Positions 61,185 through 63,814 of a stretch of 64,000 nt of DNA are shown piece by piece. The notes under the pieces were generated by a model. That model worked only from the letters and a program-made list of their open reading frames with translations. It was not told the DNA's origin and searched no databases. The translations under genes were made by a program, and so were the position numbers. The DNA comes from Pavona decussata (Eukaryota). The stretch spans positions 3,410,001-3,474,000 of the forward strand of contig CDRNST010000188.1 in assembly GCA_977016875.1 (NCBI GenBank), written 5' to 3'. How positions within the stretch are numbered: the first letter of the stretch is position 1; each line of letters opens with the position of its first letter.

Positions 61185-61927
61185 GTCGGGCAATTGGTAA
61201 TTCTGAGGGGGCAAGAGAGCTCCAACCTGCCCACCCTTGTATCCGGCAACTGATCACAGCGCAGTATTTGCTTTATCTTGTTAGCTCGCAGAGCCGGCAA
61301 CCAAAAGTTGGGTTCAAAATTGTCAGCTAATTAGCACAAAGTGTGTTTGTGTGGATAGATCACTTAACTGTTTTTCTAGCCTTTACGAAACAAGACTTGG
61401 ACAAACGTAGTGTACATCTTTATAAAAATGTTTTACCAGAAATGATAAACCTTGTCCCCAGGGTCTCATCGGTATCCAAAATGGCGAAAAAGAGCCCAAA
61501 CCGCCCTCTTGACTACAGAAATACCCCTTCCATGAAAAAAGAACCCAAACCGCCATCTTGACTGCAGAGATACCCCTACCCTAGCACCATGAAAACGAGT
61601 GGAATTTAATACACACAGGGTAAGTAGCTGGCAAAGTAGCTGCAAAACTCACTTACGCCTGTTCAGTTTCGCGATGTTTTTATTGAACTTACGATAATAC
61701 ATGTTTATAAGCCTGGAAAAGCCCAATACAGGACTTGATCTTCACCTCTGGATAAATTCATTGGGAGACGTTGACAGTTACATTAATGAACTGGCAAAAA
61801 AAGTTTAATTCAGTAACAATCATACTCTCAAAACGCCTTCCCTAGCTTCACTCTGAAATCCCTTGGTCTAGATAAAAGCAGTGAGGAAATTAATTTTATG
61901 AAAAACACGACACTCCTGAGTTTTATA

Positions 61928-61967
61928 ACAGACATGTTTTGGCAGTTGCCTCTGCCATCTTCAGTGT
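61928..61967 (-). ncRNA. Second hammerhead copy with GAAA->AAAA (G12A) core mutation, predicted inactive
   Basis: Minus strand reads aca-CTGAAGA-T-GGCAG-aggcaa-CTGCC-AAAA-CATG-TC-tgt; the substitution is at 61940. Confidence 0.65.
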
Positions 61968-62080
61968 GAAATGAACTTGTAACAAAAAAATTACAATAAT
62001 AATATGGTCTTAATTATTTCTATTATTATTGTAATTTTTTTAGCTGTATATTTCACTGTAATTTGTTACAAGTTCATTTC

Positions 62081-62120
62081 ACGCTGAAGATGGCAGAGGC
62101 AACTGCCGAAACATGTCTGT
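62081..62120 (+). ncRNA. Minimal type I hammerhead ribozyme motif, intact core
   Basis: acg-CTGAAGA-T-GGCAG-aggcaa-CTGCC-GAAA-CATG-TC-tgt: canonical CUGANGA and GAAA boxes, 5-bp helix II, palindromic CATG at helix III, GUC site, 3-bp helix I. Confidence 0.8.
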
Positions 62121-62195
62121 TATAAAACTCAGGAGTGTCGTGTTTTTCATAAAATTAAATCCCCTGGTGTTGTTAAATGTTAAGGTATTTCTATA

Positions 62196-62267
62196 AAAGC
62201 ATTCTGATTTTCAAGTCTGCATTACTCCGACATGGAGTTTACATACAAACTGTCATAAAGATACTTT
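62196..62267 (-). promoter_or_regulatory. Eukaryotic SECIS element, type II, in the deiodinase 3' UTR
   Basis: Minus strand reads AAAGTAT-CTTT-ATGAC-AGTTTGTAT-GT-AAA-CTCC-ATGTC-GGAG-TA-ATGCAGACT-TGAA-AATCAGA-ATGCTTT. This gives helix I (AAAGTAT/ATGCTTT), the AUGA..GA quartet, a fully paired 9-bp helix II, unpaired AAA and a CTCC/GGAG mini-stem. It lies ~560 nt after the DIO stop codon. Confidence 0.92.
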
Positions 62268-62822
62268 GAGAAATTCCTACACGTTAATGCTTACTTAATA
62301 GGGATAACAAGTTACACTTGAGATGAAATTCTGATAGCAAAATACTGTTCACTTTTCATCCCTTCCTGTGAACCCTCCCCCCCCCCCCCACCCCACTTCT
62401 CATCTTCATCTATTCTCATTTCTGTTATCTACGCGTTATGCAAAAATTGTTTGTACGTTATAGGTCAATGTTTTGTACATATTTTTATGTGAAAGGTGTA
62501 AGGAATAAATTTGGATCCTTATATAGCCTTAAATTCTCTGGTCATTCATGATGATCCAGTTGTCAGAGCGAGGCTTTTTCAACTGAGCAAACAACCTGTA
62601 CGCTCAAAACATTTTTAACAATACATTTGGTTCCAAAGTCTCAAAAAACGTTCAGAATATAACTTGAGTGAGAAACTGAATCAGATCTACTCAGTAAACT
62701 AATGATGTTGCTACATATCTGAAATATTTAAGAGATTTAAGAACCATAAGACATGAAATTTTGAGGCGGCTTAGTTTACTTTGTGTTTCAAAGAGACGGA
62801 AGTATTATTGTTCACCGGCAAA

Positions 62823-63104
62823 TTAATAGCTAATTACAGGGAAATTGTCCTCAGTAATTATGTTCTTGAGGCGGCGGCTAACTTCAGTAAGGTTGTATCC
62901 AAATGGCCCCACTCCTCCCTGATACAAAATTCTGCCATCCATGATAATGTAGAGTCTTTCCGGTGTGGCACCGTAAGCCACATTTGCTGTGTTCCACATT
63001 GTATCAACTACCACTGGAATCTTGACTGGACAGTGAGGCTGTAGAAGCTTAGCAGCAGCGCATCGTTGCTGAATAGTACAGTGCTGGCGTATTTTGTAGT
63101 TGTT
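62823..63104 (-). CDS. DIO: Iodothyronine deiodinase (DIO family, selenoprotein), terminal coding exon; upstream exons lie beyond the right edge
   Basis: Acceptor ttttgttttag| then NNYKIRQHCTIQQRCAAAKLLQPHCPVKIPVVVDTMWNTANVAYGATPERLYIIMDGRILYQGGVGPFGYNLTEVSRRLKN..*. This matches the DIO C-terminal half (cf. DIO1 NN.DIR.H..LQDR..AA...PVVVDTM.N.....Y.A.PERLYII..GRILY.G..GP..Y). A SECIS lies downstream. Confidence 0.92.
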   Translation of the reverse strand, partial: NNYKIRQHCTIQQRCAAAKLLQPHCPVKIPVVVDTMWNTANVAYGATPERLYIIMDGRILYQGGVGPFGYNLTEVSRRLKNIITEDNFPVISY

Positions 63105-63814
63105 CTAAAACAAAACAAATGTCCCTTGCATCAGAAGTCTGTAGAAAAATACTTACTAAGTACGTGAACGATCTAGAGAGGTCCTTGGGAACATTCTTTT
63201 TTCTTTGTATACTAATAAGGATTGTGTTTGGTTATCCGCTCCCATGAGATAAATTTAGTGCACCTTTGTTTTCGCTAACTATCTCATTGAAGCATTTCTG
63301 CTTGATCTGTTTAAACGAAATCAACTTTAGGAGGTAAATTGTTTCACGCTTCATGTTTAGTGAAGGTTTTATGCATGGAAGGTTTGATCATCGTGATGAG
63401 ACAACTTTCGTGAGCATAATTAATGCAAACGATTTACAGCGTATTCACTGCAATAGTGTTGAATAAGAGAAACACAAAGGTCGACATATTGATAATTAAC
63501 TTATAAAAGCACATATCTGAACGTTGTCGTTGTCGTTTTCATGATCTCCCATGGATAAAATATAAAGGTCTTAGGACTACGTTACGTAAGCATCAATGTA
63601 TGGTCTCCAAAGAACAAGGAGACATTGACTTGAAAATATACCGCTCTCACATGATCCCACATAAACAAACAGTGAACATGAATAGACTTCATAATTAATG
63701 TATAGGGCTGTGCGGAAATCTTGCGTTTTTGACGCATCAGTACCAAGTTTAGGCTCCTAAGAGACTGAATACCCTTGGTGACTGTGGAAGCCGGTATAGA
63801 TGTTATTACATCAG

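Follow-up and report, generated by a model that had tools for sequence, protein, structure and literature searches.

The deiodinase gene and its SECIS element

The window analyzed here, a stretch of 64,000 nucleotides from the coral Pavona decussata, carries close to its right end the last coding exon of an iodothyronine deiodinase-like selenoprotein gene (62826-63104, minus strand; PF00837, E 3.3e-16). This exon is bounded by an acceptor AG at 63105-63106, which is preceded by a polypyrimidine tract, and by the stop codon at 62823-62825 (minus strand). The upstream exon with the Sec codon lies ~100-600 nt past the right end of the window, likewise on the minus strand (G000:C188:3474104-3474616, corresponding to L050 1104-1616), and contains an in-frame TGA within the active-site motif ...NFGSCS-TGA-PEFM.... 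In the 3' UTR, a SECIS element was detected at 62199-62264 on the minus strand (Rfam SECIS_1, 34.2 bits, E 2.9e-4), just under the Rfam gathering score of 35 for this model. The in-frame TGA of the upstream exon confirms the gene served by the SECIS as a true selenoprotein gene comprising at least two exons, which were analysed individually. Its assignment combines the near-gathering covariance score and this upstream TGA with the conservation of the SECIS core in two other scleractinians at 81-85% identity, namely a coral represented by an ENA assembly (L051, 5462-5523) and Desmophyllum pertusum (L052, 5732-5772). Both loci have the deiodinase exon and the SECIS in common with the window, and the remaining 3' UTR is unalignable.

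A homologue search using the last deiodinase exon returned relatives only at 89% identity or less; one of the Logan contigs concerned (L039) represents genomic DNA of a related species and stops before the SECIS. When the whole window was compared with Rfam at gathering score, no matches were obtained, and on 3.5 kb at E ≤ 1 only SECIS_1 and a spurious long-hairpin match to MIR841 (88 bits vs a gathering score of 200) were returned. Between stop codon and SECIS, the 3' UTR also contains a long G run (GGGGTGGGGGGGGGGGGGAGGG; 62374-62394, minus strand), at which the contigs of every sequencing run break and which is the only part matched by one metatranscriptome contig.

A palindromic insertion 30 nt past the SECIS

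On the 3' side of the SECIS in gene orientation lies an insertion of 294 bp (61864-62158), which is made of two inverted arms and nothing else and is separated from the SECIS by a gap of 30 nt up to the target-site duplication (TSD). According to a repeat search, the arms (61885-61986 and 62062-62163) are 96% complementary, and they are joined by an inner perfect stem of 21 bp (61984-62004 and 62021-62041). Folding of the minus-strand RNA from 61840 to 62290 predicts one near-perfect hairpin of ~120 bp with a minimum free energy (MFE) of -219.4 kcal/mol; shuffled sequences reached -85 ± 5 kcal/mol (z = -25.3), and none of 100 shuffles folded as well. In the same prediction, the SECIS stem-loop folds independently of the neighbouring hairpin.

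The insertion is flanked by a direct repeat, with a left copy (AAATCCCTTGGT) at 61856-61867 and a right copy (AAATCCCCTGGT) at 62157-62168 that matches it in 11 of 12 positions. As the last 4 nt of the left copy coincide with the consensus end of the inserted element, and altogether the outer 2-4 nt of each copy are also what the element's consensus has at its ends, the duplication free of element sequence amounts to ~8 nt. Elsewhere in the same family, TSDs of 9-12 bp are found, which are clear at two loci (L032 and L034), where they are perfect and 10-12 bp long. Two DNA-like runs of separate samples (X15 and X18) have contigs with the left junction, and the right junction is carried by X15, X18 having no contig there. 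Downstream of the gene, two direct repeats of 32 nt (61500-61531 and 61549-61580; 49 nt apart, 88% identical) apparently belong to another short tandem or dispersed repeat.

Most of the structural description given in a first-pass annotation of this DNA was thus borne out. A discrete insertion (given there as 290 bp) of two inverted arms ~30 nt 3' of the SECIS is present, each arm contains the core of a minimal hammerhead motif, and, if transcribed, the palindrome is predicted to form the duplex of more than 100 bp adjoining the SECIS that had been proposed. Its 12-bp TSD stands as a direct repeat, though with the mismatch and the shorter non-element portion described above.

The arms derive from a Penelope-like element

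A search of the 602-Mb assembly identified the arms as a dispersed repeat with at least 87 matches, most of them single and ~157-184 nt in length, and many arranged in inverted pairs with 0.4-2.9 kb between them. The family has about 100 terminal copies in the genome, and its copies are 90-99% identical, i.e., young. In the longer pairs, the inverted homology reaches up to ~850 nt inward, into ORFs coding for a reverse transcriptase (RT) and a putative endonuclease (EN). Directly upstream of the arm, longer copies encode a domain of the type ...VVYKFSCxGCxxCYVGETTRH...REH..., and a reverse transcriptase is encoded farther upstream (RVT_1, E 2e-8 and 3e-11). One ORF fragment scored 18.2 bits with the GIY-YIG profile (PF01541), below the curated cutoff of 22.6, and the nuclease assignment is therefore based on motifs and Atlas neighbours. 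One copy (L041, on G000:C61) has retained an uninterrupted ORF of 605 amino acids with an above-cutoff RVT_1 match (E 3e-11) and a PDKG motif, and the arm is located downstream of this ORF. At its C-terminus, a nuclease-like motif (...YKFSCxxCxxxYVGET...EH) of GIY-YIG/CCHH type is visible by eye, and a GIY-YIG domain was not reported on the full ORF at E ≤ 0.01; the nearest Atlas clusters are animal HTH_animal/RVT_1/DUF8422/GIY-YIG proteins, i.e., PF01541 carriers.

Judged by its sequence, this architecture is that of a canonical EN+ Penelope-like element (PLE), in which a full copy likewise consists of an ORF with RT and C-terminal GIY-YIG-like parts (PMC8557442, PMC11167929), and the arm corresponds to the 3'-terminal, pLTR-type region of the element. 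Every base of both window arms aligns to the 3' end of the autonomous PLE. Retention of the DKG motif in this family argues against the Hydra clade as described. Within one of the long inverted PLE pairs (L033, G000:C80:2759100-2763100), RT fragments were additionally observed on the opposite strand between 1640 and 2560 (2216-2557, RVT_1 E 3e-11, and 1799-1993, both minus); their sequence is unlike that of the PLE RT, and they probably represent a nested insertion of a different retroelement.

Alignment of 36 family copies in sense orientation revealed two alternative 3' ends, a short one (...CATAAAATTA(A)) and a long one that extends 26-27 nt further to ...TTTCCTCACTGCTTTTATCTAGACCA. Both are found in the window. 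The right PLE copy (62003-62158, plus strand and hence antisense to the deiodinase mRNA) is a 5'-truncated 3' end without the tail, finishing at the short terminus ...CATAAAATTAA, and corresponds collinearly to the stretch that, in longer copies, immediately follows the GIY-YIG-like ORF (e.g., L031 3204-3360). The left copy (61864-62004, minus strand, same sense as the deiodinase mRNA) is likewise a 3' end of this element truncated on the 5' side, lacks 24 internal nt of the family consensus, and carries the 26-27-nt tail (61864-61890, minus strand), which is thus found only at one of the insertion's two ends. The truncated 5' ends of the two copies meet head to head at ~62003. The apparent loop of the hairpin is PLE sequence retained only in the right copy, the left one being shorter. 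The subfamily variant TTATAAAAC is present in either arm, and over ~115 nt the arms are distinguished by no more than 2 substitutions, a picture consistent with a single template and with a fairly recent event.

The same 5'-truncated inverted arrangement is common in the genome at sizes of 0.6-2.9 kb, and seven such pairs were examined. Six of them (L031-L036) have the tail at one end and stop at ...AAAATTA at the other, whereas the remaining pair (L037) has it at both ends, unlike L031-L036 and the window. A spacerless fold-back of the same PLE tail, in which two arms of ~100 nt abut, was also encountered (L038, G000:C58:3306560-3306777), and the architecture of the window hence recurs in even more truncated form.

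These features closely resemble those of known PLE insertions, for which inverted 5'-truncated copies together with a one-sided tail of 30-40 bp have been described (Craig et al. 2021, PMC8557442). Extreme 5' truncation, an abutting inverted copy, an extension at one end, a TSD and a terminal hammerhead motif are all shared. Differences concern the tail, which comprises 26-27 nt in the window vs 30-40 bp in published PLEs (PMC8557442), and the extent of truncation, as both window copies are cut to ~140-155 nt and, unlike in published PLE insertions, only the fold-back remains.

The hammerhead motif

The hammerhead core CUGAAGA / GAAAC occurs once per arm, on opposite DNA strands, and reads CUGAAGA-U-GGCAG(aggcaa)CUGCC-GAAA-CAUG-UC in PLE sense. 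In the right copy, the motif (62084-62117, plus strand) equals the 34-mer consensus exactly and its core is intact, with cleavage predicted after 62117; it would be present in RNA only if the plus strand, antisense to the gene, were transcribed. In the left copy (61931-61964, minus strand, mRNA sense), one mismatch is found (CTGCCAAAAC vs consensus CTGCCGAAAC), by which the catalytic G12 is replaced by A at 61940 (CpG to CpA). G12 serves as the general base of the hammerhead. The catalytic boxes C3-U4-G5-A6-N7-G8-A9 and G12-A13-A14 are accordingly complete in the right arm and incomplete in the left one, and at least 14 further decayed copies among those listed show this G12-to-A change as well. 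Across the genome, the 34-nt consensus had 102 occurrences when up to 3 mismatches were allowed, 45 of which were exact, as compared with 0 for the reversed control.

Minimal hammerheads (min-HHRs) were previously located in the repeats of PLEs, where some are paired on opposite strands at distances of 100-700 bp (Cervera and De la Pena 2014, PMC4209133). The window motifs share with them the CUGANGA and GAAA boxes, the unpaired base (here U) between positions 9 and 10.1, the G10.1-C11.1 pair closing helix II, the palindromic, self-complementary ACAUGU segment of helix III, a short helix I and the arrangement in pairs, with one motif per strand and a few hundred bp between them (PMC4209133). 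Helix II of the window family has 5 bp and a 6-nt loop vs 7-8 bp in Schistosoma (PMC4209133). Unlike those min-HHRs, one of the two window motifs is without G12, and the assignment as a hammerhead is that of a candidate by sequence, based on descriptor-type features and without an Rfam model match. The Rfam hammerhead models gave no match at E ≤ 1 on 3.5 kb and only noise at E ≤ 10 on the 136 nt of the right arm, which is no more than expected for minimal motifs lacking helix III, originally found with relaxed descriptors. Neither the MFE fold of the motif monomer nor the cofold of a dimer corresponds to the hammerhead fold. With the family being this young, covariation cannot support the helices, and motif variants among the copies break pairs and do not compensate them. 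In two more distant PLE families (L047 and L049), a simple min-HHR descriptor found no motif.

The motif belongs to the copied PLE 3'/pLTR region and is, at this locus, best read as a relic. To form helix III, a minimal PLE hammerhead depends on a second copy in sense orientation, and even with that copy it shows hardly any activity (PMC4209133). Because the two window motifs lie on opposite strands, any single transcript has only one sense motif, and helix III cannot form by dimerization within it. Additionally, the predicted hairpin has the left-arm motif fully base-paired to the other arm. With G12 lost, no sense partner and the motif buried in a duplex, ribozyme function in the deiodinase mRNA appears very unlikely.

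In another part of the genome (G000:C102:44867-54300), at least 11 copies of the hammerhead 34-mer were observed on one strand, mostly ~760 nt apart and most of them with a G5-to-A change (CTAAAGA). Their arrangement resembles a tandem array derived from the same family, either retrozyme-like or formed by multimeric PLE tails.

Is the hairpin part of the deiodinase mRNA?

Among the poly(A) signal variants listed for a hexamer scan, none occurs in the gap that separates SECIS and insertion. Past the SECIS, the first canonical one is a predicted ATTAAA at 61804-61809 (minus strand), 55 nt beyond the insertion, followed by AATAAA at 61679-61684 (minus strand). Both had already been named in the first-pass annotation as the first candidates beyond the palindrome, the former one base off. 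Taken together, the hexamer-free gap and the ATTAAA beyond it suggest that the ancestral 3' UTR probably included the point of insertion, and the scan as such would favour read-through through the palindrome. In L051 and L052, AATAAA and ATTAAA are absent within ~420 nt past the SECIS, and hence hexamer-based prediction of poly(A) sites may be unreliable in these genomes.

Transcript evidence was drawn from Logan contigs instead of raw reads, and such contigs cannot show RNA ends or poly(A) tails. The one probable RNA run with unique coverage (X5, its classification as RNA being a guess) has a single contig of 223 nt and depth 3.7 on 62171-62381, and no contigs of this run were found on the unique flank distal to the palindrome (61300-61863) or on the coding exon. 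The contig departs from the window 12 nt before the palindrome, ending on the palindrome side in 12 unmatched letters that agree with the expectation neither for a simple empty allele nor for a plain poly(A) tail beginning at that base. This coverage weakly counts against read-through. Small ORFs at 62315-62419 (minus), 61831-61935 (minus) and 62177-62266 (plus), looked up as a way to RNA or other contigs, are not on record. All in all, the chance that the palindrome is inside the main mRNA is put at somewhat below even.

Origin of the palindrome and alternative explanations

Very probably, the palindrome arose when a PLE inserted once, 30 nt beyond the SECIS, in the 3' region of this coral's selenoprotein deiodinase gene. 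A plausible course of this event can be modelled on published PLE biochemistry, as the PLE protein of Anolis was shown to cut the two target strands and to extend each of them (Frangieh et al. 2024, PMC11167929). In this system, reverse transcription starts at two internal sites, and the tail corresponds to the stretch between them (PMC11167929). By analogy, the GIY-YIG nuclease of the coral PLE would make staggered cuts in both target strands, leading to the duplication of 8-12 bp, and each freed target 3' end would prime reverse transcription of PLE RNA. For the left arm, reverse transcription would begin at the distal start site and copy the 26-27-nt tail, and for the right arm at the proximal start site, giving no tail. 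Both cDNAs would then halt after ~140-155 nt and be joined head to head, yielding two inverted 5'-truncated copies. Insertion by the one PLE reconstituted in vitro did not require the ribozyme (PMC11167929).

Other origins of the palindrome were considered as well. If the hammerhead-like string were a chance part of terminal inverted repeats, a MITE or fold-back DNA transposon could likewise be small, palindromic, TSD-flanked and devoid of coding capacity. The arms, however, align collinearly to an RT-encoding element at its 3' end, and the supposed terminal inverted repeats reach ~850 nt into RT/EN coding sequence in other copies. Moreover, the ends are systematically unequal with a tail at one of them, TSD length varies, and no transposase was found. 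With arms taken from the 3' end of a retroelement and unequal ends, a DNA transposon is so improbable that it was rejected. No better are the prospects of a retrozyme-type non-autonomous element, i.e., a hammerhead-bearing generator of circular RNA mobilized by PLE enzymes instead of a truncated autonomous PLE. The tandem array with a period of ~760 nt and the same hammerhead motif on G000:C102 speaks for it, as does a 2026 preprint that ties animal retrozymes to PLEs (doi 10.64898/2026.07.22.740005). Yet both window arms align base for base to the 3' end of the autonomous PLE itself, and the two motifs lie on opposite strands, so that no direct tandem pair of ribozymes delimits a monomer. This explanation was rejected on the same two grounds, the origin of the arms and motifs that are not in tandem.

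A different question is whether palindrome and SECIS form a functional unit. The first-pass annotation had proposed a cassette of SECIS, dsRNA hairpin and ribozyme in the 3' UTR, in which the duplex would recruit ADAR, Dicer or Staufen and/or the hammerhead would cut the mRNA, thereby tuning Sec insertion or mRNA stability. Hairpins of inverted-repeat transposons in animal 3' UTRs, e.g., of inverted Alu pairs, are substrates of ADAR, Staufen and Dicer. If transcribed, the window palindrome resembles inverted Alu pairs in being a long, near-perfect, repeat-derived intramolecular duplex in or beside a 3' UTR, and differs from them in that this duplex stems from a single fold-back insertion instead of two independent ones. 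The high predicted stability of the hairpin and the hexamer pattern, by which the ancestral UTR probably crossed the target site, favour the cassette. It is also in line with the observation that metazoan RNA editing tracks repeat-derived dsRNA, which ADARs including those of corals edit (PMC5625713). Its ribozyme part, in contrast, would rely on a single mRNA-sense hammerhead that has exchanged G12 for A and is buried in the duplex, and PLE min-HHRs cleave poorly even as dimers (PMC4209133). Equally, the arms are a generic repeat of ~100 copies without association with SECIS elements elsewhere, and the X5 contig covers the SECIS side, diverges 12 nt before the palindrome and has no counterpart on the distal flank. 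In L051 and L052, the SECIS is kept without the insertion, which argues that it is the host's own sequence and not part of a cassette; the PLE arm was not detected in the fetched portion of either locus, an absence that does not equal a true empty site. The proposal is therefore unsupported as to the nature of its parts, the arms being a PLE 3' end and the SECIS being the host's, and as a regulatory device it retains a slim chance at best.

As a PLE insertion, the palindrome is most likely a neutral or mildly deleterious passenger, which would be a generic ADAR/Dicer substrate if transcribed. Nothing indicates selection for the hairpin, and any effect on the deiodinase is hypothetical. It would be surprising if a retained 3' UTR duplex of ~120 bp, 30 nt from the SECIS, measurably altered selenoprotein output in this coral lineage, be it via hyper-editing, dicing, nuclear retention or steric interference with SBP2 binding.

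Implications

The locus adds a further case to a type already known, namely truncated and inverted PLE insertions with PLE minimal hammerhead motifs, and its only locus-specific feature is its position 30 nt from a SECIS. Within 294 bp, it offers a clean worked example of all published hallmarks of Penelope-like integration, i.e., priming on both target strands, two RT start sites as reflected in a one-sided tail, extreme 5' truncation, a TSD and a minimal hammerhead motif. At the same time, it may serve as a warning that hammerhead-bearing palindromes in introns and UTRs of corals are by-products of PLE insertion and not purpose-built RNA devices. The sole possible consequence of interest is whether the mRNA tolerates a perfect hairpin of 120 bp at a distance of 30 nt from a SECIS, or whether its poly(A) site has moved as a result. 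Should the duplex indeed be retained and exert an effect, the deiodinase gene would provide a natural case of a transposon hairpin modulating Sec recoding.
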